Shown: positions 2,201-18,335, numbered from the stretch's first letter. The stretch: 64,000 bases of DNA from Macrostomum lignano (GCA_002269645.1 NIVC01002006.1:124001-188000); one strand, 5' to 3'. The notes: a model not told the origin generated them from the sequence alone. A program made the numbers and translations.

Positions 2201-2683
2201 TCAGCTAAGCGTGCAGTCACAGGCAGCACCAAAGTGCAGCACCAGCTGCCTGCTCATCTCATTGGCCAACTGCTCAACAGCCGGGCCAGCCGCGCCCGCC
2301 CAGGGACAGCCATAGGCAAAATGACCTTCGGCGCCGCAATCGAAGCAGGACTCAACCAGGCCGCGGCAATGAGCCGCGAGTTCGAGCCGAGCCCGAGCGC
2401 CGCACAGAGGCGAATCGTCCAGCCGATCGACAGCTTCCAGTGCGTCGCAATGATCGGACATTTCAACGATGACGACAGCGACTGTTGGCGACCAGACTGA
2501 CAGGACGCGGCCGAATCTGGAGAAGGCCCGCTCCAGATCTGCCGCGCTTGCGCCTGGCGGTAAACCGCTGACGCGGATCATACTACTGCCACAGCCGGTA
2601 GTATGCATAGTAGCCCGTGATCTGCGTGTTTTCATTACGGGGCCAAGGCAGCCTCTGGCAGGCGAAGCGGCTGAGGGAGCCAT
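2201..2683 (-). CDS. Divergent intronless SRSF7-like paralog (degenerate RRM + Zn knuckle, no RS domain)
   Basis: 160-aa ORF. LERAFSRFGRV..VW..EM.D..DA.EAV..LD...CG.RAR.E aligns by eye to the neighbouring SRSF7-like RRM; CFDCGAEGHFAYGC knuckle; stop follows with no RS repeats. Confidence 0.75.
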   Translation of the reverse strand: MAPSAASPARGCLGPVMKTRRSRATMHTTGCGSSMIRVSGLPPGASAADLERAFSRFGRVLSVWSPTVAVVIVEMSDHCDALEAVDRLDDSPLCGARARLELAAHCRGLVESCFDCGAEGHFAYGCPWAGAAGPAVEQLANEMSRQLVLHFGAACDCTLS

Positions 2684-3044
2684 GGAAGTTTGCCATGCAA
2701 GTTATTAATAGTAAAATTTAAAAGTGAACAGGTGAGAAATATGAAGCACCCTATATAAATCCGAACAGATAGAAAAATGCATAGTGCGATACGTCTCAAT
2801 TGCCGATGATTCAAGAGATCAAAATTCATCACAACAATTGTTACAAAATTGATTTATTTGCCAGATAGAATAATCAATACCATTACACAATGGCCTTCAA
2901 AACTGCATCCTATCACTTTATACTCGTAAGCATAAATGCTGGAGGCGAATTTAAGAACATTGGAAGCAAAAATATTGTCCAAGAAGTAAGCAAGCAATAA
3001 TGCGATCAACTTGTGATTATTGTGGGATCTATGTGATTTGTGAT

Positions 3045-4800
3045 TTAGGGATTTTTTAAGGATAAATGTGATTTATGTGATTTATTAAGACTTGGATTTT
3101 TATGGGATGCAATGTGACTTATGATGTGGGGATTTTCATGCGATCCCATGTAATTTATGATGTGGGGATTTTCATGCGATCCCATGTAATTTATGATTTG
3201 GGGATTTTCATGCGATCCCATGTAATTTATGATTTGGGGATTTTCATGCGATCCCATGTAATTTATGATTTGGGGATTTTCATGCGATCCCATGTAATTT
3301 ATGATTTGGGGATTTTCATGCGATCCCATGTAATTTATGATTTGGGGATTTTCATGCGATCCCATGTAATTTATGATTTGGGGATTTTCATGCGATCCCA
3401 TGTAATTTATGATTTGGGGATTTTCATGCGATCCCATGTAATTTATGATTTGGGGATTTTCATGCGATCCCATGTAATTTATGATTTGGGGATTTTCATG
3501 CGATCCCATGTAATTTATGATTTGGGGATTTTCATGCGATCCCATGTAATTTATGATGTGGGGATTTTCATGCGATCCCATGTAATTTATGATTTGGGGA
3601 TTTTCATGCGATCCCATGTAATTTATGATTTGGGGATTTTCATGCGAACCCATGTAATTTATGATTTGGGGATTTTCATGCGATCCCATGTAATTTATGA
3701 TTTGGGGATTTTCATGCGATCCCATGTAATTTATGATTTGGGGATTTTCATGCGATCCCATGTAATTTATGATTTGGGGATTTTCATGCGATCCCATGTA
3801 ATTTATGATTTGGGGATTTTCATGCGATCCCATGTAATTTATGATTTGGGGATTTTCATGCGATCCCATGTAATTTATGATGTGGGGATTTTCATGCGAT
3901 CCCATGTAATTTATGATTTGGGGATTTTCATGCGATCCCATGTAATTTATGATTTGGGGATTTTCATGCGAACCCATGTAATTTATGATTTGGGGATTTT
4001 CATGCGATCCCATGTAATTTATGATTTGGGGATTTTCATGCGATCCCATGTAATTTATGATTTGGGGATTTTCATGCGATCCCATGTAATTTATGATTTG
4101 GGGATTTTTATGGGATCCCATGTAATTTATGATGTGGGGATTTTTATGGGATCGCATGTAATTTATGATGTGGGGATTTTCATGCGATCCCATGTAATTT
4201 ATGATTTGGGGATTTTTATGCGATCCCATGTAATTTATGATTTGGGGATTTTCATGCGATCCCATGTAATTTATGATGTGGGGATTTTTATGCGATCCCA
4301 TGTAATTTATGATTTGGGGATTTTTATGCGATCCCATGTAATTTATGATTTGGGGATTTTTATGCGATCCCATGTAATTTATGATTTGGGGATTTTTATG
4401 CGATCCCATGTAATTTATGATTTGGGGATTTTCATGCGATCCCATGTAATTTATGATTTGGGGATTTTTATGCGATCCCATGTAATTTATGATTTGGGGA
4501 TTTTTATGCGATCCCATGTAATTTATGATGTGGGGATTTTTATGCGATCCCATGTAATTTATGATTTGGGGATTTTCATGCGATCCCATGTAATTTATGA
4601 TTTGGGGATTTTCATGCGATCCCATGTAATTTATGATTTGGGGATTTTCATGCGATCCCATGTAATTTATGATTTAGGGATTTTTATGGGATTTTGTGGT
4701 TTTTTATTTGAGAATTTTTTGGAATCCTGTCTGGTTTTATGATTTGGGGATTTTGCGATTTTGATTAGGGGATTTATGGAAGCACATGTAATTTATGATT
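3045..4800. repeat. 36-bp minisatellite (ATGATTTGGGGATTTTCATGCGATCCCATGTAATTT), ~47 copies
   Basis: Tandem periodicity that explains the 12-aa-repeat ORFs on both strands. Confidence 0.95.
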
Positions 4801-4915: not shown

Positions 4916-5791
4916 TTAGCCTCCAGTCTCAAACTCCAACTGGCATTTCGGCAACTTTGAGACCAGCTGCTCGCCCAGCCGGGCCCAGTCGGAGGCATCC
5001 AGGCTGGCCAGCTGACCAAGCCGCAGGTGCCTCAGGCCCTCGATGCGGGCCATCTCCAGCACTCCCTTCGGGGTCACCTGAGGACACTGGCTAACGAACA
5101 GCCGCTCCAGCCGGCAGTGATCAGCCAGGTAGGTGAACGCGGAATCGTCCAAGTAGGGGCAGTTCTTCAGCCGCATCGAACTCAACCTGCTCAGGCCCAG
5201 CAGGTGGGGAAACCCGGCCGAGCTTAGCGAGGCCGTGTCGGCCAGGATCTCCTGGATGCGCTGGTCGGGCGGCACGCCGCCCAGCTGGTTGTAGTCCGAC
5301 GTGGCGCCGCGATCGTCGGCCCACACGACTGAGGCGCCGTTGCGGAGCAGCCATTCGGCGCAGGCGCGGTCCGGGCCGACCTGCGGACAGATGAATGATT
5401 TGGGGATTAATTATTATGAATCAGGGTTAAGGATTAAATACTCGAGATCAATGATGGGATATATCGATTAAATATTAGAAATTAGGCTGAGAGGTAGTAG
5501 AGGGATTTGAGCTGGGGGAATTAGAGTGGTCTGACAAAGGGATCAGAGGCATTTGAGCTGGGGGAATTCGAGTGGTCTGACAAAGGGAGACAAGAGATGA
5601 GACGCCAAACGCGGCATTTCAACAGACACCTGTTTGATCCGATCGCGGTCCACTTTATTCCACACGCCAACCAGCCAAGCAAAGTAGCCGCGGCTCTGCT
5701 GCAGCAGCCCCGGTCCAAGCCGGCCGCCTGCACCGGCTGCGGCTTCTGCTAGAAGCAGCAATTGGCGTTTGTAAGCAAAAATGGCAGGCAT
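4916..5791 (-). CDS. ATP5S: Mitochondrial ATP synthase subunit s / factor B; exons 5791-5630 and 5380-4916 (~208 aa)
   Basis: FAWLVGVWNKVDRDRIKQ|VGPDRACAEWLLRNGASV...DYN matches the factor B motif (FN.VD..RI..VGPDRA..EWLLR.GA). Leucine-rich-like C-terminus; phase-0 GT-AG intron 5629-5381. Confidence 0.85.
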
Positions 5792-5859
5792 GCAGCAAAT
5801 GAAATTATGAATGCTTTGCGAAGGAATAAAACTTGAGGAATGAACAAGTGAAGATGAAT

Positions 5860-6165
5860 TTCTCAGGTAGGTCAGGGATCATGGGGAATTGCTCAGGTGG
5901 CTCAGGGATCATGGGGAATTGCTCAGGTGGCTCAGGGATCATGGGGAATTGCTCAGGTGGTTCAGGGATCATGGGGAATTGCTCAGGTGGCTCAAGGATC
6001 ATGGGGAAATGCTCAGGTGGCTCAGAGATCATGGGGAATTGCTCAAGTGGCTCAGGAATCATGGGGAATTGCTCAGGTGGCTCAGGGATCATGGGGAAAT
6101 GCTCAGGTGGCTCAGGGATCATGGGGAATCACTCAGGTGGCTCAGGCATCATGGGGAATTGCTTA
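5860..6165. repeat. 30-bp minisatellite (CTCAGGTGGCTCAGGGATCATGGGGAATTG), ~10 copies
   Basis: Tandem periodicity between the PNKP stop and the ATP5S start. Confidence 0.9.
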
Positions 6166-6558: not shown

Positions 6559-9500
6559 CTATTTCTCCACCAGATACTGACAGTACAGTCTCCTGTGCTC
6601 ATCCACTTGAAAGCTCGGCACAAACGGCACCTTCAAAATGCGATCAAATCCTTCAGACAGGCTGGGCTCAACGAACTTGGCCCGCATCTGGTTGAACACC
6701 ATCTCGCTCACCGGCTCGCGTCGCTTCTTGCTGGGCGGCCCGTCCGCTGGATTGTCCGCGGCCTCCTCTTCCACAATGCGGCGGTACCGCTCGTTGTGCA
6801 GGCACTGGGCCAGGCTGCACTGCATCACCAGGCAGGCGGCCCCGGCTTTGCAACGGCGGGCGCACTCGATATAGCGCTGCCGGCTCTCCTTGTCCACACT
6901 GGTGTTGTCCACCTGCGGGTTGGGGTTGGTGTGGGACTGCACTCCCAGATCCTCAGTTGCTGGGCCAGCCTCCCAGATCCTCAGTTGCTGGGCAGCCTTC
7001 CAGATCCTGTTGTTGGGCTACTGACCTCCTATTATCCAAGCCCCATGAACTCTCACCAGCACAATGGCTCTGCCAGAAGCAGACTTGAGCGCAGTTTCGG
7101 CAGACTGCACGCACTTCTGCCAGGTGCCCAGCCGGTCCCGATTCACAACGCAGACAGCTGGACCCGCAGCGCCCTGGCCGGCCAGCAAGCGGCTGATTTG
7201 AGCGCACAGAGTGGACTTGCCGCTGGCCGGGTAGCCCACCAGCAGCACAAGCAGAGCAGCCGACTTGCTACAAGAAGAATCGTCAAGCAAAAACTGACGC
7301 AACTCGTCTGTAGGCCAGCAATCTGCGTGGCCATTTTTCGCATTAAGCAGAGCTGTGGGATCGAACTCCGGCATGCGGCACTGAGACAGCGGCACGGGGC
7401 GATGGCCCAGAAAGAACTCTTCGGGCGTGTGAAAGGCGCTCAAACGACAGTTAAGAGCGAATAGGCGATCCGAGCAGGAGAAGTCGGCTTTGCGGCCGCT
7501 GCGACCTGGCAGTTTGTATTGCATTTTTCTCATGCACATTTGTGCAGGGTGGAGATGTCGGCACAGAGCAATTGAAAACAGATACGAGTCAAAGAAGCGC
7601 ATTGATGGCGTATGAGTAAAGAGAAATTGCCTCAGAACAGAACATCACGACATGAAAATCCAAGACAAGGGAATCCAAGACAAGGGAATCCAAGACAGGG
7701 GAATCCAAGACAGGGGAATCCAAGACAGGGGAATCCAAGACAGGGGAATCCAAGACAGGGGAATCCAAGACAGGGAAATCCAAGGCGGAAATCAAGAGAG
7801 AGAAATACAGGACAGGGAAATCCAAGACAGGGAAATCCAAGACGGAAATCTAGAGAGGAAAAGAAAAGGGGATTTAAAACATGGAAATCAAGGATGGAAA
7901 TCTAGATATAGGAATCCAAGACAGGGGAATCCAAGACAGGGGAATCCAAGACAGGAAAACCAAGCGAGAAAAAACAAGACAAAGAAACCCAAAAAACCTA
8001 AAATTCTAAGGCATTTACAAACTAGGAAACTCTCACTAGAAGCAATTCCAGAGAAAAATCCCCTAAAACATCCGGACTGAATCCTGAAATGGTCTACACT
8101 TATATCAGGCCTCAGACACTGTGAATGGTGGTAGACGCAGATCATCATACCAAATGGTCAAGAGTAGCAATTAGGTCATCATATGGGCCTTAATTAACGT
8201 GTTACTCACATCTCCGAACAAGGATATATTTAAAAAACAGTAAGAACAGGCCTCAGACAGTAAATAGTGGTAGATGTGTCATCATACCAGCCGGTCAAGA
8301 GTAGCAATTAGGTCATCATATTGGCCGTCGTTTTAATTAAACTTTAAGAAACGTCTAATGAAAGTGTACCAGCTTTTAAATCCCAGGGGAAATTTTACAC
8401 GGGGAAATCCCATACGGGGAAATCCCATACGGAGAAATCCCATACGGAGAAATCCCATACGGGGAAATCCCATACGGGGAAATCCCATACGGGGAAATCC
8501 CATATGGGGAAATCCCATACGGGGAAATCCCATACGGGGAAATCCCATACGGGGAAATCCCATACGGGGAAATCCCATACGGGGAAATCCCATACGGGGA
8601 AATCCCATACGGGGAAATCCCATACGGGAAAATCCCATACGGGAAAATCCCATACGGGGAAATCCCATACGGGGAAATCCCATACGGGGAAATTCCATAC
8701 AGGGAAATCCCATATGGGGAAATCCCATACGGGAAGTTCTACGGTATACGGGGAAACCTGAGAAAAAAGAAGTAACAGAAATAGAAAAATGCAGTACTAG
8801 TAAATCTCACCTTTCCCAGTCTCAGCTGGTCTGCCAGCTGCGTCTCCAACGTAAAACGACTCAGCCGGATCCGGTCGGAGGCCCGCATTGAATTCATCTC
8901 GCTCCAGTAGGTGCCACATGCCAGTGCAGGGTTTGCGATATCGTTGACCGCGCACGCTAAGAAAAACTTGCATCGGTGCGCCCAGGCGAGCGGAAACTCT
9001 CTCAATCTGTTTCGTTATTAAGCGATTTAGTTCAATAAGACTCATGATTATATTTCAAAACTGATATGAAAATACTTTTCAATAATAGCTGCAGTTCAAA
9101 CATCACTATAAATCCAGGCCTCAGACAATGAAAATGGTGGTAGATGCATCTCGTCATACCAACAGGTCAAGAGTAGCAATTATGTCATCATATCGGCCTT
9201 ATAAGACATACATATAAAACAATTAACTTTGCATTAGTGAAATGACAGTTAAAAGTACAGTTCATCGAATTTATATTAAATCTTGCCCCAAAATTCTGGC
9301 CTCAGACTTTGTGACTGGTGGTAGATTCAGCTCATCATACCGACAGGTCAAGAGTAGCAATTAGGTCATCATATGGGCCATATAAATATAATCATTTATT
9401 GAGACACATGAGAAACGCAGACAGTGAAGGGCGATTTACGAAAGGCGGTGAAGGGTGATTCTCGGAAGGCGGTGAAGGGCGATTCTTGAAAGGTGGTGAA

Positions 9501-11201
9501 GGGTGATTCTCGGAAGGCGGTGAAGGGCGATTCTTGAAAGGTGGTGAAGGGTGATTCTCGGAAGGCGGTGAAGGGCGATTCTTGAAGGGTGGTGAAGGGT
9601 GATTCTCGGAAGGCGGTGAAGGGTGATTCTCGGAAGGCGGTGAAGGGCGATTCCTGAAAGGCGGTGAAAGGTGATTCTCGGAAGGCGGTGAAGGGCGATT
9701 CCTGAAAGGCGGTGAAAGGTGATTCTCGGAAGGCGGTGAAGGGCGATTCCTGAAAGGCGGTGAAGGGTGATTCTCGGAAGGCGGTGAAGGGCGATTCCTG
9801 AAAGGCGGTGAAGGGCGATTCTTGAAAGGCGGTGAAGGGTGATTCTCGGAAGGCGGTGAAGGGCGATTCCTGAAAGGCGGTGAAGGGCGATTCTTGAAAG
9901 GCGGTGAAGGGTGTTTCTCGGAAGGCGGTGAAGGGTGTTTCTCGGAAGGCGGTGAAGGGCGATTCTTGAAAGGCGGTGAAGGGCGATACTTGAGAGACGA
10001 AAAGAATTACGCAGGTGTGTTAGCAAGCAAGTTAGAAAATAATTTGCATTATAATACTAAATAATTTGTAAAATTCTGATGTACGAACGTACAATAAATC
10101 CGGCCTCAGACACAGTGAATGGTGGTAGATGCAGCTCATCATACCAACAGGTCAAGAGTAGCAATTGGGTCATCATACCGGCCTATCTAATAAGGAAAAC
10201 AGAAAAGAAAAGTTCCATAGCCTCAGACAGAAACAAGGTGGTAAACCTTCTCATCATGAGACACATCAAGAGTAGCAATTGAGTCATCATTGGCTATTCA
10301 AAACAAAGAAATAAACTGGCATAGTAGGACACATACTCACTTTGACTTTCAAATCCTCCACTCTCACTTTGCCAACCTCGACACCTTTCTGATTAGAGAA
10401 CAGTGCCACTTTGTAGCCCTCAGCGACCAGAGATTTCAATCGGCCAGGCACCTGGGGATAAATCACTTTCCAATCCGCCAGATCTTTGGCAAAAACTCGC
10501 CCAGACTGCGTGGTAATCAGCGTGCCGTCCATATCGAATCCGGCGATTTTGCGGCTGGGCAAACAGCCGGGCGTCGTGTAGACAAGAACTGCGCCGAAAT
10601 CGCGCCAACCAGTTGGAGTCGGCTTTAATTGGCTGGGAGAGTCGGATGAATTTGATTGGCTGGCCGAGTTGGAGGCTTCCAATTGGCTGGCGCTGGCTGC
10701 GCAGTCTGATTGGCTGGAGAACCGAGCGGCTGCTTGGCGCATTAAGTCTAATTGAAGATCAACCTGACTAGGATTTTCATCGCTATCTTGCTGGGCCCCC
10801 TCGCCCGCATTCAATTGCTCGAGTCTCCGCTTCTTTACCACTGGCTCCGAGTCCTCAGGTGCCAATGACACCTTCAGCAGACAGTCGTTGCCAAGTATCA
10901 AAGCGTCGCCATTGGCTAATCTCGCCGACTCGCCCATAGTCAATAGTTGACGCTGATCACCACCTTTGTCCTCACTGTTAGAGTTGACATACAACCTACC
11001 AGCTCCAACACAAGTCACTGTCAATGATTCTACACCGCTGCTACCGCTGTCTGTTTGTTGCAAATCTAATCTGGCTTGCTGACGAGAACAGGCCGCGTCT
11101 CGAATGTCGAACTGTGGCTGACGGCCGATGACAACGCTGCCGCCGCTGTCTATGGTGCAAACTGTTCTGCCCGTGCGAGGGCAAACCAAACTGGCGCGCA
11201 T
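6559..11201 (-). CDS. PNKP: Bifunctional polynucleotide phosphatase/kinase; exons 11201-10341, 9006-8811, 7505-7057, 6912-6559 (~619 aa)
   Basis: FHA (VIGR...D.ACSRQQ), HAD phosphatase (IAGFDMDGTLITTQSG, FSNQ, RKP.TGMW, FYVGDAAGR, DFSCSDRLFALN) and kinase P-loop (VGYPASGKST, NRD.LG.WQKC, VDNT). All introns GT-AG with consistent phases 0/1/0. Confidence 0.95.
7655..7945. repeat. 15-bp minisatellite (CAGGGGAATCCAAGA) in PNKP intron 2
   Basis: Tandem periodicity. Confidence 0.9.
8107..8190 (-). ncRNA. C/D-box snoRNA, U76/SNORD76-like, copy A (PNKP intron 2)
   Basis: Sense strand: AGGCC-cat-ATGATGA(C)-cctaaTTGCTACTC-TTGA(D')-...ATGATGA(C')-...CTACCACCATT...CTGA(D)-GGCCT, with a terminal stem. 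Confidence 0.85.
8249..8326 (-). ncRNA. C/D-box snoRNA, U76-like, copy B (PNKP intron 2)
   Basis: GGCC stem; C/D'/C'/D boxes and the AATTGCTACTCTTGA guide are intact. Confidence 0.8.
8385..8735. repeat. 15-bp minisatellite (GGGGAAATCCCATAC) in PNKP intron 2, ~23 copies
   Basis: Tandem periodicity. Confidence 0.95.
9116..9199 (-). ncRNA. C/D-box snoRNA, U76-like, copy C (PNKP intron 1)
   Basis: AGGCC/GGCCT stem; C, D' and D boxes intact; C' variant ATGACGA; guide conserved. Confidence 0.8.
9297..9380 (-). ncRNA. C/D-box snoRNA, U76-like, copy D (PNKP intron 1)
   Basis: TGGCC/GGCCA stem; all boxes and guide conserved. Confidence 0.85.
9440..9990. repeat. 24-bp minisatellite (GAAGGCGGTGAAGGGTGATTCTCG) in PNKP intron 1
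   Basis: Tandem periodicity separating the two snoRNA doublets of intron 1. Confidence 0.95.
10102..10183 (-). ncRNA. C/D-box snoRNA, U76-like, copy E (PNKP intron 1)
   Basis: GGCC stem; all boxes and guide conserved. Confidence 0.85.
10217..10297 (-). ncRNA. C/D-box snoRNA, U76-like, copy F (most diverged; PNKP intron 1)
   Basis: ATAGCC/GGCTAT stem (compensatory relative to GGCC). C, D', C' and D boxes and the AATTGCTACTCTTGA guide are retained. Confidence 0.8.
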
Positions 11202-11299
11202 GGCAGCTGCATGAAGACAAACGAAAGTTGAAAACTTGAGAAATTATGCGGACTGATGAAATAACTTAAAAAGGTCACATTCCAAGGACTTTTTTCAGG

Positions 11300-12068
11300 G
11301 CACAGATCAGATCCTACAACCTTCAGGGCACAGATTGGATCCTACAACCTTCAGGGCACAGATCGGATCCTACAACCTTCAGGGCACAGATTGGATCCTA
11401 CAACCTTCAGGGCACAGATCGGATCCTACAACCTTTAAAGCACAGATCGGATCCTATAATAGCCTTCAGGGCTCAGATCGGATCTTATAATGGCCTTCAG
11501 GGCTCAGATCGGATCCTATAAACTTCAGGGCACAGATCGGATCCTATAATAGCCTTCAGGGCTCAGATCGGATCCTATAAACTTCAGAGCACAGATCGGA
11601 TCCTACAACCTTCAGGGCACAGATCGGATCCTGCAACCTTCAGGGCACAGATCGGATCCTACAACCTTCAGGGCACAGATCGGATCCTACAACCTTCAGG
11701 GCACAGATCGGATCCTGCAACCTTCAGGGCACAGATCGGATCCTACAACCTTCAGGGCACAGATCGGATCCTGCAACCTTCAGGGCACAGATCGGATCCT
11801 ACAAACTTCAGGGCACAGATCGGATCCTACAACCTTCAGGGCACAGATCGGATCCTACAACCTTCAGGGCACAGATCGGATCCTGCAACCTTCAGGGCAC
11901 AGATCGGATCCTACAAACTTCAGGGCACAGATCGGATCCTGCAACCTTCAGGGCACAGATCGGATCCTACAACCTTCAGGGCACAGATCGGATCCTGCAA
12001 CCTTCAGGGCACAGATCGGATCCTACAAACTTCAGGGCACAGATCGGATCCTACAACCTTCAGGGCAC
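11300..12068. repeat. 28-bp minisatellite (CTTCAGGGCACAGATCGGATCCTACAAC), ~27 copies
   Basis: Tandem periodicity between the FHA-only ORF and PNKP. Confidence 0.95.
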
Positions 12069-12390
12069 AAATGGAACCTATGATACAAAAAATATTCACC
12101 CCAAGACTTTGAGAGCAGAGCAGAGATCAAAATCGCCAGGGCCTTTAGTGTGCAAATAAAAGTCCAAAACCTATTACGTATAGAGGTTGCTGAGAAATGA
12201 ATAAAACGTTGACACAATGAATCAAATAGACAAATAAAAACATCACGGCTTTCCTATCAAAAATCAAAAGTATCGAGAACATAAATGCATAAATTTTTCG
12301 ATATAAAAAATACATTTGCGGAAAATCAGATGTTCAAATCATGCTACTTAGTAAGTAGCGCAGTTCAGCGCATGGGCACAAGATGCCATG

Positions 12391-15911: not shown

Positions 15912-16462
15912 AGAAAGTTACAAAAGATTAGCAAAGAAGTGAATCAAAGCAATTGATGCTCAGGGAGATAAGCTTTCCTACAGCTAGCTTTGGATGATCG
16001 TAAACCAAAGGTGATATATATATAAGCTACTAGTGAGCCAATGTACAATCTTTTCAATCTCAAATAAACAAAGTTAGTTGATCAGATCCAACTTCTGCTC
16101 TCTTTTCATTTGAAACTACTATTGGTTTTTATGTCTTAGTTTTGAACACGCCATTTTTGGACTGCAATAAGCAAAATATAAGGTGATCATAAACCAAAAG
16201 TGACAAAATAGATGGTGATTGTAAACCAAAGTGGCAAAATAGATAATGATCATAAACTGAAGTATTGCCATTATAACATTACAAATGTATTCAAATTTAC
16301 TTAAATGCCTAATTAATCTTTTGGTTTATGATGATGATCATGCAGATACAACAACTTTTTACTAATAAACTTTAATAATAAATTAAAATTGTAAACTTTA
16401 TTGCTTATACATGAGCATCAATTGCTTTGATTCACTTCTTTGCTAATCTTTTGTAACTTTCT
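15912..16462. repeat. Perfect 51-bp inverted repeat pair (15912-15962 / 16412-16462); possible MITE or foldback
   Basis: AGAAAGTTACAAAAGATTAGCAAAGAAGTGAATCAAAGCAATTGATGCTCA and its exact reverse complement 450 bp away. Confidence 0.75.
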
Positions 16463-16484
16463 AATGCTTGCAATCAAGCATCCC

Positions 16485-16640
16485 CCAGATAGCAAGCATC
16501 CCCCAGATAGCAAGCATCCCCCAAATAGCAAGCATCCCCCAGATAGCTAGTATCCACCAGATAGGAAGCATCCCCCCTCCCAGATAGCAAGCATCCCCCA
16601 GATAGCAAGCATCCCCAAATAGTAAGCATCCACCAGACAA
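16485..16640. repeat. 18-bp minisatellite (AGATAGCAAGCATCCCCC)
   Basis: Tandem periodicity. Confidence 0.85.
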
Positions 16641-16724
16641 TAAGTAGCTAGTACAACAATTTCCTTAAGCTCTATAGTGGCTCCTTTAAAATTGGCATGA
16701 CGCTTACTTTTACGTTTGAAATTG

Positions 16725-18335
16725 TGTATCTTTTATGTTTGACATGGTGGCTCTTTAATGTTTGACATGGTGGCTCTTTTATGTTCTACATGGTGGCTCT
16801 TTTATGTTTGATTCGGGGTTTTTTTAATGTCTGACATGGTGTCTCTTTAATGTTTGACATAGTGGCTCTTTTATGTTTGACATGGTGGCTCTTTAGTGTT
16901 TGAAATGGTGGCTCTTTAATGTTTGACATGGTGGCTCTTTAATGTTCAACATGATGGCTCTTTATTGTTAGACATGGTGGCTCTTTAATGTTCAACATGG
17001 TGGCTCTTTAATGTTCTACATAGTGGCTTCTTTATTTTCGACATGGTGGCTCTTTAATGTTTGGCATGATGGCTCTTTGATGTTTGACATGGGGTCACGA
17101 ATATACTTGACATGGTGACTTGTTAATGTTAGATATGGTGGCTCTTTAATGTTTGACCTGGTGGCACCTTAATGTCTATAATGATGGCTCTTTAATGTTT
17201 GAAATGGTGGCTCTTTAATATTTGACATTGTGGCTCTTTAATGTTTGACATTGTGGCTCATAAATGTTTGACATGGTGGCTCTATAATGTTCGACATGGT
17301 GGCTCTTTAATGTTTGACATGGTGGCTCTTTAATGTTTGACATTGTGGCTCATAAATGTTTGACATGGTGGCTCTATAATGTTTGACATGGTGGCTTTTT
17401 AATGTTTGACATGGTGGCTCTTTAATGTTTGACATGGTGGCTCTTTTATGTTCGACATGGTGGTTCTTTTATGTTTGACATGGTGGCTTTTTTATGCTTG
17501 ACATGGTCGCTATTTTATGCTTGACGTGGTGGCTTTTTAGTGTTTGACATTGTGGCTCCTTAATGTTCTTCATGGTGGCTCTTTAATGTTTGAAATAGTG
17601 GCTCTTTAATATTTGACATGGTGGCTCTTTAATGTTTGACATGGTGGCTGTTTAATGTTCAAGATGGTGGCTCTATAATGTTAGACATGGTGGCTCTTTA
17701 ATGTTTGCCATGGTGGCTCTTTAATTTTTGACATGGTGGCTCTTTAATATTCGACATGGTGGTCCTTTTATGTTTGACATGGTGGCTCTTTAATGTTTGA
17801 CATGGTGGCTCTTTAATGTTTGGCATGATGGCTCTTTGATGTTTGATATGGAGTCACGAATATACTTGACATAGTGACTTGTTAATGTTAGACAGGGTGG
17901 CCCTTTAATGTTTGACCTGGTGGCACCTTAATGTCTATAATGATGGCTCTTTAGTGTTTGAAATGGTGGCTCTTTAATATTTGACATGGTGGCTCTTTAA
18001 TGTTCAACATGGTGGCTGTTTAATTTTTGACATGGTGGCTCTTAATTGTTTGACATGGTGGCTTTTTAATATTCGACATGGTGCCTCTTTAATGTTTGAC
18101 ATGGTGGTCCTTTAATGTTTGACATGGTGGCTCTTTTATGTTTGACATGATGGCTCTTTAATGTTTGACATGAAGTCACATATATGTTGGACATGGTGGC
18201 TCTTTAATGTTCGACATGATGGCTCTTTAATGTTCAACATGGTGGCTCTTTAATGTTAGACATGGTGGCTCTTTAATGTTTGACATGGTGGCTCTTTAAT
18301 GTTTGACATTGTGGCTCTTTAATGTTTGACATTGT
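16725..18335. repeat. 23-bp minisatellite (ATGTTTGACATGGTGGCTCTTTA), ~70 diverged copies
   Basis: Tandem periodicity with a higher-order duplicated variant block (e.g. GTCACGAATATACTTGACAT at ~17095 and ~17853). Confidence 0.95.

Follow-up and report, generated by a model that had tools for sequence, protein, structure and literature searches.

Six probable U76-type box C/D snoRNA genes in the PNKP introns of Macrostomum lignano

Two introns of one gene in a 64,000-nucleotide stretch of the Macrostomum lignano genome (GCA_002269645.1 NIVC01002006.1:124001-188000; hereafter the window, which is the whole stretch analysed) contain six short elements that resemble one another. An earlier note, made from the sequence alone, had read them as U76 (SNORD76)-like C/D snoRNA genes. 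We asked whether these elements are genes or passive repeats and, if they are genes, which family they belong to and which rRNA nucleotide they would guide. We conclude that they are very probably box C/D snoRNA genes encoded within introns, belonging to the U24/U76 lineage and showing the architecture of U76 (SNORD76).

The host gene is PNKP (6559..11201, minus strand). Its four coding exons (10341-11201, 8811-9006, 7057-7505, and 6559-6912) encode a 619-aa product with FHA, 3'-phosphatase, and 5'-kinase domains. The earlier note had named the same host, and the assignment is borne out by Pfam matches to FHA_2, PNK3P, and a P-loop kinase domain, by PDB 3zvl as the best solved-structure match (4e-80), and by 100% identity of the spliced product to M. 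lignano BOX15_Mlig031906g2. Four copies lie in intron 1 (9007..10340, 1334 nt, GT..AG) and two in intron 2 (7506..8810, 1305 nt). All six are on the minus strand and sense to PNKP, and the gene model confirms their proposed intronic placement. Intron 1 also holds a minisatellite with a 24-nt unit at about 9400-9995, between copies 2 and 3, and the intron 2 copies are flanked by minisatellites with a 15-nt unit at about 8380-8760 and about 7600-7970. No U76-like snoRNAs were found in the PNKP introns of Lingula, Capitella, or Lottia; the sole weak match in those searches was coding sequence rich in GATGATGA.

Each copy is 78-82 nt long and has the same layout. Read 5' to 3' on the minus strand, a stem strand (GGCC or ATAGCC) is followed by ATGATGA, a 14-nt spacer ending in (T/C)AATTGCTACTC, and TTGA, and then by 8-9 nt, ATGA(T/C)GA, a block of the form T(C/T)TACCAC(C/T), CTGA, and the closing stem strand. 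The order of stem, C, D', C', and D boxes given in the earlier note therefore holds in all six copies, and its six positions agree with ours to within 1 nt. The spacings are typical of C/D snoRNAs: 14 nt from C to D', 8-9 nt from D' to C', and 22-26 nt from C' to D. The AUGAUGA C box and CUGA D box are invariant across the six window copies and a seventh paralogue found elsewhere in the genome, and C' is AUGA(U/C)GA and D' is UUGA across the family. The terminal stem comprises 4-6 bp and is 100% paired. Its outermost pair changes in a compensatory manner (G-C in five copies, A-U in c10217, and U-A in the seventh paralogue), in a stem alignment that contains one chance row. In five copies the stem is 2 nt further from box C than in a canonical kink-turn.

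The most divergent copy in the window, c10217 (10217..10297, minus strand), starts 43 nt downstream of the intron 1 5' splice site and is 64-70% identical to the other five. Its terminal stem is ATAGCC/GGCTAT, and its parts are the C box (10284-10290), D' guide (10271-10281), D' UUGA (10266-10269), C' box (10251-10257), ACCACC block (10237-10245), and D box (10223-10226), all on the minus strand; it scores 72 bits against model R1. The remaining five are of the GGCC type, are 80-88% identical to one another, and also lie on the minus strand. In intron 1 these are c10102 (10102..10183), c9298 (9298..9379), and c9117 (9117..9198), the last with a degenerate C' box, ATGACGA, and ending 110 nt upstream of the 3' splice site. 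Intron 2 contains c8249 (8249..8326, 78 nt) and c8108 (8108..8189), and the latter has its C box at 8176-8182, D' guide at 8163-8173, D' at 8158-8161, C' at 8142-8148, accessory block at 8127-8135, and D box at 8112-8115.

To place the target, we located the rDNA in the species' own genome with a 108-nt yeast-like probe. The flatworm 28S departs from a 23-nt yeast-like pattern at more than 2 positions, and a search of the same genome with this pattern, allowing up to 2 mismatches, accordingly gave no match. The recovered sequence was confirmed as LSU rRNA (2899 bits) and reads CUUGGUGGUAGUAGCAAUUACUC at the target site. The D' guide UAAUUGCUACU forms an all-Watson-Crick duplex of 10-11 bp with this 28S at one site in all seven paralogues (for example, 10 bp for the guide CAAUUGCUACU of c10102 and 11 bp for that of c9298); the earlier note had already paired the guide with conserved LSU rRNA. 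The duplex is unique within 18S, 5.8S, and 28S, where the next best sites have 9 pairs or fewer or are rich in G.U. With UUGA as D', the canonical +5 rule pairs the U of UUGCU with the A of GUAGC, which is the equivalent of yeast A1449 and human A2350 proposed earlier. This nucleotide is A1714, counting from the start of the Rfam LSU model, and its neighbor is G1715. Yeast experiments predict that a C before UUGA can shift the site by 1 nt to the neighboring G (PMC5389607). Since the guide ends in such a C, the exact methylated nucleotide is ambiguous between the A and the adjacent G.

The guide also follows a change in its target. The M. lignano 28S has GCAAUUA where the yeast probe sequence has GCAAAUA, and the UAUUUGC of human SNORD76 is replaced by UAAUUGC in the M. 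lignano guide. In comparison with human SNORD76 and human 28S, an rRNA substitution is matched by the compensating base in the flatworm guide. At this A site the guide is U24 in yeast and Arabidopsis (PMC3511168) and U76 in human (PMC6466398); the site is ancient. Conservation among copies does not extend to the sequence next to box D, and a search for a second target of this sequence gave best sites that differed between copies, none of them conserved.

Upstream of box D, the CUACCACCA block is complementary to UGGUGGUAG, the rRNA adjacent to the guide duplex, as had been suggested for a second conserved element. In c8249 the block reads CUACCACUA and the pairing is kept through a G.U wobble. 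Extra base-pairing elements as described by van Nues et al. (2011, EMBO J) likewise involve a conserved block beside the methylation duplex, and the 2-nt overlap in M. lignano falls within the 1-2-nt overlaps with the guide duplex described there (PMC3116282). The human snoRNAs named in the consulted passages of PMC3116282 do not include U76. The block could just as well be left over from an ancestral U24 D guide.

Conservation follows these functional parts. Among the six window copies and the seventh paralogue, invariance is seen in 38/42 columns of the functional parts (boxes, D' guide, and ACCACC block), as opposed to 4/34 spacer columns (Fisher p = 1e-12), even though the three lineages are just 64-70% identical overall. 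The previously noted contrast between constant boxes and drifting spacers is real, and this selective conservation is seen directly in the sequences. Genome-wide, we searched with the RF00069 family model and an exact composite pattern; with a single copy as query, blastn had detected neither the seventh paralogue nor the two c10217-type copies. The pattern TGATGA-N(2-9)-ATTGCTACTCTTGA had 21 matches in the 764-Mb genome and 0 in the reversed control, which excludes chance, and C box, guide, and D' are exact in 21/21 genomic copies. The whole set occurs in three near-identical genome copies with seven paralogues in each. The seventh paralogue lies outside PNKP, upstream of a MORC-like gene, so the earlier idea of a family relocated to PNKP and amplified six-fold is supported only in part. 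Multicopy snoRNA families and host-gene mobility are well documented (PMC3511168, PMC8178906). Retroposition of the copies was considered and rejected, as their flanks have neither poly(A) tails nor target-site duplications.

We then compared the copies with human SNORD76, whose layout had been given in the earlier note. Published primers containing TGACAGTTTATTTGCTACTCTTGAG and GAGGATCTTAACCACCATTATCTTA agree with that layout (PMC5390076), and its annotation to 28S-A2350 with GAS5 as host was confirmed (PMC6466398). The box C/D layout is alike, a 13-nt UUGCUACUCUUGA comprising the 3' part of the D' guide, a C, and the UUGA D' box is identical, and the human RNA pairs with these same rRNA positions over 11 bp. 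In both, box D has a ACCACCAUU block 9-11 nt upstream of it and there is no functional D guide. For the human RNA we take this distance to be 9 nt, its last two nucleotides and the position of box D being our assumption. A published reverse primer covers 7 nt of it (PMC5390076). There are also differences: the human snoRNA exists as one copy in non-coding GAS5, whereas M. lignano has seven paralogues per genome copy, up to four in one intron, hosted by a DNA-repair gene and a site upstream of a MORC-like gene; the human guide has UAUUU, whereas M. lignano has UAAUU, matching flatworm rRNA; and the spacers are unrelated. Neither PNKP nor the MORC-like locus is a GAS5-type host or shows its synteny, which weakens orthology by position only, because many snoRNAs do not keep the same host (PMC3511168). 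The architecture of the PNKP copies matches human SNORD76 and not U24.

The relation to U24 nevertheless requires consideration, as the copies might be U24 (SNORD24) orthologues proper, in which one ancestral snoRNA serves both the C1437 and the A1449/G1450 equivalents, as in yeast. The Rfam check of the window that had been proposed gave a divided answer: no match reached the gathering score, but SNORD24 (RF00069) was the best family of all six copies, at 23.6-35.9 bits against a cut-off of 41 bits, with c9117 highest (35.9 bits) and c10217 at 34.3 bits. A 2012 survey lists U76 without an Rfam family (PMC3511168). Matches to DsrA, microRNA, CRISPR, and IMES families in a permissive Rfam search were minisatellite artefacts far below threshold. 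The M. lignano copies cover the same rRNA helix region as U24 and share the UUGCUA and ACCACC motifs of the SNORD24 model consensus, with ACCACC forming the 5' part of the D guide in U24, and the U24 D' guide directs the homologous Am in yeast and Arabidopsis (PMC3511168). However, U24 has the guide ACCACCAAGAUC abutting box D and targeting yeast C1437 / human C2338, and this guide is absent from the PNKP copies. In every copy the ACCACC block is 9-11 nt away from box D and AAGAUC is missing, so the C1437 equivalent cannot be placed by the +5 rule, and the varying sequence next to box D has no shared target. Moreover, a separate U24-type cluster elsewhere in the same genome (the C1605/C1474/C3194 cluster) does have a D guide, AUCACCAAGAUCG-CUGA, and one of its members scores 42.3 bits, above the SNORD24 cut-off. 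We regard true U24 orthology as very unlikely and the least probable of the alternatives.

Somewhat less improbable, though still unlikely, is that most copies are non-functional products of passive segmental duplication in a repeat-rich genome, with one or two active at most. The similarity of the five GGCC-type copies and their setting among minisatellites would fit such an origin, as would the D box mutated to CTAA in the counterpart of c9117 in both other genome copies and the ATGACGA C' box of c9117 itself; from these sequences, some copies may be redundant or decaying. In addition, only c9117 is near a 3' splice site, the others being 291-1210 nt away. Substitutions between the near-identical genome copies were fewer in snoRNA (6/487, 1.2%) than in other unique intron sequence (20/679, 2.9%), but the difference is not significant (p = 0.07) and is a trend only, the genome copies being too similar for the test to be informative. 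Against passive duplication stand the invariant functional columns across three otherwise nearly randomised lineages, the compensatory stem changes, the exact retention of C box, guide, and D' throughout the genome, and flanks without a poly(A) tail or other mark of retroposition. Alternatively, the clusters could act mainly in cis or as composite RNAs, through sno-lncRNA formation or modulation of PNKP splicing, with rRNA methylation secondary. At least two snoRNAs per intron is the arrangement that yields mammalian sno-lncRNAs (PMC11028025), it is present in both PNKP introns, and the intron 1 minisatellite sits exactly between two copies. Yet between genome copies this minisatellite differs in its number of units and has diverged by about 10%, comparable minisatellites occupy snoRNA-free introns elsewhere in the window, and the constraint on the rRNA guide is strong. 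We consider a mainly cis-acting or composite role very unlikely.

For genes of box C/D snoRNAs of the U76 type, the sequence leads us to infer expression, processing, and methylation as follows. The snoRNAs would be transcribed within PNKP pre-mRNA, and the 4-6-bp terminal stem would close a C/D kink-turn that recruits SNU13, NOP58, NOP56, and fibrillarin. RNAs of ~80 nt would be released from spliced introns by exonucleolytic trimming together with endonucleolytic cuts between copies, the latter being needed with four copies together in intron 1 and two in intron 2. Once in the nucleolus, the D' guide would pair with 28S AGUAGCAAUUA, and fibrillarin at C'/D' would 2'-O-methylate the A of GUA*GC, although the neighboring G or both are also possible. 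The block upstream of box D would pair with the adjacent rRNA as an accessory element rather than as a second methylation guide. The predominant mode in animals is one snoRNA per intron (PMC11028025); several per intron departs from it, and efficient processing is not guaranteed. Rice intronic snoRNA clusters (Liang et al. 2002, NAR 30:3262) and Drosophila H/ACA clusters (Huang et al. 2004, JMB 341:669) are cited as having several genes in one intron (PMC3089462, PMC5932544), which, on those citations, implies processing of a poly-snoRNA intron. What sets the M. lignano cluster apart is that its members are isoforms of a single C/D snoRNA and that the host is a protein-coding gene of a flatworm.

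The shared introns raise the question of whether the copies are separated endonucleolytically or form sno-lncRNAs. Because several C/D snoRNAs share each intron, it is conceivable, albeit with little probability, that splicing yields stable snoRNA-capped lncRNAs acting as protein sponges or coupling PNKP expression to ribosome biogenesis. One example could be c10102, the 24-nt minisatellite (about 25 units), and c9298, spanning about 0.9 kb. If true, no sno-lncRNA system outside vertebrates would precede it, and the animal concerned is a flatworm model that regenerates.

We found no snoRNA survey of M. lignano in the literature. Our results leave current concepts unaltered and make a fairly ordinary addition to a well-known RNA family, while giving a conserved guide of rRNA modification a well-supported annotation in a flatworm that serves as a model for regeneration and stem cells. 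They add an animal protein-coding gene to the cases in which isoforms of a C/D snoRNA cluster inside single introns, and they show cleanly how a guide can co-vary with a substitution in the rRNA that it targets. The sequences also suggest that the split of an ancestral U24 into C-site (U24-type) and A-site (U76-type) guides is not restricted to vertebrates.

Repeat finding and alignment independently recovered six dispersed copies of ~80 nt within window positions 7800-10600, which formed a sensible snoRNA layout on the minus strand only. Each copy opens with the 5' arm of a terminal stem, followed by AUGAUGA, 14 nt ending in (U/C)AAUUGCUACUC, and UUGA. After a further 8-9 nt come AUGA(U/C)GA, U(C/U)UACCAC(C/U), a variable tail, CUGA, and the 3' arm of the stem. 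The C' box is degenerate (ATGACGA) in c9117, a copy named, like the others, by its start in the window. An earlier note had described these elements as U76/SNORD76-like C/D snoRNA genes in sense orientation within PNKP introns, and its coordinates and motif string were right, the six copies being re-found at 8108-10297. The host assignment was also upheld. Four exons on the minus strand, bounded by canonical GT..AG sites (10341-11201, 8811-9006, 7057-7505, and 6559-6912) splice into a 619-aa PNKP protein with FHA_2, PNK3P, and P-loop kinase domains, which matched mammalian PNKP crystal structures at 4e-80 and was 100% identical to the M. lignano protein BOX15_Mlig031906g2. All six copies lie in sense within its introns: c9117 (9117-9198), c9298 (9298-9379), c10102 (10102-10183), and c10217 (10217-10297) in intron 1 (9007-10340), and c8108 (8108-8189) and c8249 (8249-8326) in intron 2 (7506-8810), all on the minus strand.

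Long minisatellites with units of 15, 24, 28, and 30 nt crowd the introns and intergenic DNA of the window (C2006:124001-188000 within the 764-Mb assembly), with tracts at 3045-4673, 5805-6128, 7600-7970, 8380-8760, 9400-9995, 11266-12100, and 16400-18250. These repeats generated false open reading frames and weak, spurious matches to Rfam (DsrA, IMES-2, and microRNAs). Downstream of PNKP, neighbouring exons at 1-530 and 2201-2701 (both minus strand) each encode an RRM and then a CCHC zinc knuckle, as in SRSF7-like splicing factors, and appear to be tandem paralogues. An exon of an LRR protein lies at 4916-5410 (minus strand).

We located the rDNA with a yeast-like probe, and Rfam called LSU rRNA (2899 bits), SSU rRNA, and 5.8S rRNA there. 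Its intergenic spacer also holds a full-length U1 spliceosomal snRNA gene (C4853:16919-17081, or 4920-5082 of sub-stretch L044; 151.7 bits), which lies between the 28S and the following 18S and is co-oriented with the rRNAs. The assembled 28S, 18S, and 5.8S were scanned, snoscan-style and ungapped, against the D' and D guides of the six copies and of a seventh paralogue outside PNKP. This check, which the earlier note had proposed, returned a unique duplex of 10-11 bp (UAAUUGCUACU : AGUAGCAAUUA), all Watson-Crick and at an identical 28S position in 7/7 paralogues, where the 28S reads GCAGAUCUUGGUGGUAGUAGCAAUUACUCAAG. Runner-up rRNA sites for the D' guide were shorter or G.U-rich. No conserved D target was found in the 28S, 18S, and 5.8S scan, the best sites for box-D-adjacent sequence being weak and different for each copy. 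The predicted methylation site, the A of GUA*GC in GGUAGUAGCAAUUA, is the partner of the fifth guide nucleotide from D' (UUGA). Measured from the C targeted by U24 (GAUC*UUGG = yeast C1437), this A corresponds by our count to yeast A1449, the target named earlier. Its human counterpart, 28S-A2350, is listed for SNORD76 (PMC6466398), and the homologous Am in yeast and Arabidopsis is guided by U24 (PMC3511168).

Overlooked earlier was that the C ending the guide and the U starting D' create a C|UUGA junction. As shown by van Nues and Watkins, C|UUGA acts as a 5-nt box and shifts methylation away from it by 1 nt (PMC5389607). If the junction behaves in this way here, the modification may fall on the neighbouring G (equivalent to yeast G1450) or on both nucleotides. 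Yeast U24 is a comparable case.

Guide and rRNA also appear to have changed together. The flatworm 28S reads GCAAUUA versus GCAAAUA in yeast, a sequence that human shares. Correspondingly, the guide reads UAAUUGC in the flatworm versus UAUUUGC in human SNORD76, as given by the published qPCR primer TGACAGTTTATTTGCTACTCTTGAG (PMC5390076). The predicted 11-bp duplex is kept over the same positions in both species with a change on both partners, which provides independent support for the target assignment.

The earlier note had also suggested that a second conserved block pairs with adjacent rRNA, and this complementarity was borne out. The CUACCACCA of the ACCACC block can pair with 28S UGGUGGUAG, a stretch that directly precedes the guide duplex on its 5' side and shares 2 nt with it. 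The pairing comprises nine Watson-Crick pairs in four copies and nine pairs including one G.U in c8249; c10217 and the seventh paralogue have seven plus one G.U. It fits an accessory 'extra base-pairing' element, a class reported by van Nues et al. to stimulate methylation up to five-fold, with overlaps of 1-2 nt (PMC3116282). Equally, the block may be a conserved remnant of the D guide of U24, a reading compatible with an accessory role.

The Rfam models bear on whether the copies are closer to U76 or U24. SNORD24 (RF00069) was the best family for 6/6 copies at sub-threshold scores (23.6-35.9 bits versus 41), and none of the six reached the gathering score in the whole window. U76-named families were absent among the Rfam matches of the window, and U76 had no Rfam accession in a 2012 survey (PMC3511168). 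The predicted architecture is that of U76, in line with the SNORD76-like layout described earlier: the 13-nt UUGCUACUCUUGA of human SNORD76 is identical in the flatworm copies, and both set the ACCACCA(U/C)U block off from box D, by 9-11 nt in the flatworm. We take the human distance to be 9 nt, which assumes where box D lies and what the final two nucleotides are. The human reverse primer, reverse-complemented GAGGATCTTAACCACCATTATCTTA, gives 7 nt of it (PMC5390076). In U24, by contrast, the corresponding ACCACCAAGAUC adjoins box D and serves as the guide for the C site.

U24-type genes exist separately in M. lignano as three-member clusters at C1605:69263-69850 (L038 4764-5351), C1474:120165-120744, and C3194:28316-28896. 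Their D guide, AUCACCAAGAUCG-CUGA, targets the yeast C1437 equivalent, and one member scored 42.3 bits, above the SNORD24 cut-off. The genes occur one per intron with very short exons between them and no long ORF, suggesting that the host gene is probably non-coding. Their D' guides look degenerate or variable. Together with the U76 architecture of the PNKP copies, these genes indicate that M. lignano divides predicted labour between U24-type and U76-type guides as vertebrates do.

Genome-wide, the exact pattern TGATGA-N2-9-ATTGCTACTCTTGA (C-box tail, guide, and D') matched 21 sites, while the reversed control matched 0. Three PNKP loci (C2006, C3151, and C611) accounted for six sites apiece; their ~97-98% identity outside minisatellites implies homeologues or haplotypes, and minisatellite copy numbers vary among them. 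The remaining sites, one each at C1301:83847-83926 (L037 4846-4929), C70:668216-668295, and C713:422854-422933, represent the seventh paralogue. It has a TGCC/GGCA stem, precedes the start codon of a MORC-like (GHKL-ATPase) gene by ~860 nt, and may occupy a 5'-UTR intron or an outron. A 28-nt-unit minisatellite follows; its unit GGCCAGCCTCCCAGATCCTCAGTTGCTG, directly downstream (L037 4980-5680), also occurs in reverse orientation in PNKP intron 3 (6913-7056).

Pairwise identity separated the paralogues into three old lineages, namely five GGCC-stem copies (80-88% identical to one another), c10217, and the C1301 copy, with 64-70% identity between lineages. Across the seven, 38/42 columns in the boxes, D' guide, and ACCACC block were invariant, versus 4/34 in spacers (Fisher p = 1e-12). 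At the outer end of the terminal stem, the pair is G-C, A-U, or U-A depending on lineage, a compensatory change. This combination is the expected signature of selection on an RNA, as previously argued, rather than of a passive repeat. An under-powered comparison of near-identical genome copies gave 6/487 substitutions in snoRNAs versus 20/679 in unique intron sequence (p = 0.07). The D box of the c9117 counterparts in C3151 and C611 (L039 5888-5973 and L040 5410-5495) has changed from CTGA to CTAA, which suggests that this paralogue is decaying there.

Only c9117 lies near its 3' splice site (110 nt), the others being 291-1210 nt away, and endonucleolytic cuts between copies would be needed to free individual snoRNAs. 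Two snoRNAs in one intron can also give rise to sno-lncRNAs (PMC11028025). Intronic snoRNA clusters occur in rice and among Drosophila H/ACA genes, as cited in PMC3089462 and PMC5932544.

A U76-like element was absent from the PNKP genes of Lingula, Capitella, and Lottia, the three species examined, which implies that PNKP hosting is lineage-specific. The proposed relocation to PNKP with six-fold amplification is supported only in part, as the family also resides outside PNKP, upstream of the MORC-like gene. Retroposition was rejected since the flanks carry no poly(A) tail, pointing to spread by local DNA duplication. Movement of snoRNAs between hosts is well documented (PMC3511168). Overall, the original observation was confirmed and its interpretation supported with corrections, expression and methylation being predicted from sequence. 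Mildly unusual is that snoRNA isoforms cluster inside single introns of a DNA-repair gene and that the polyploid-like genome carries this arrangement three times.
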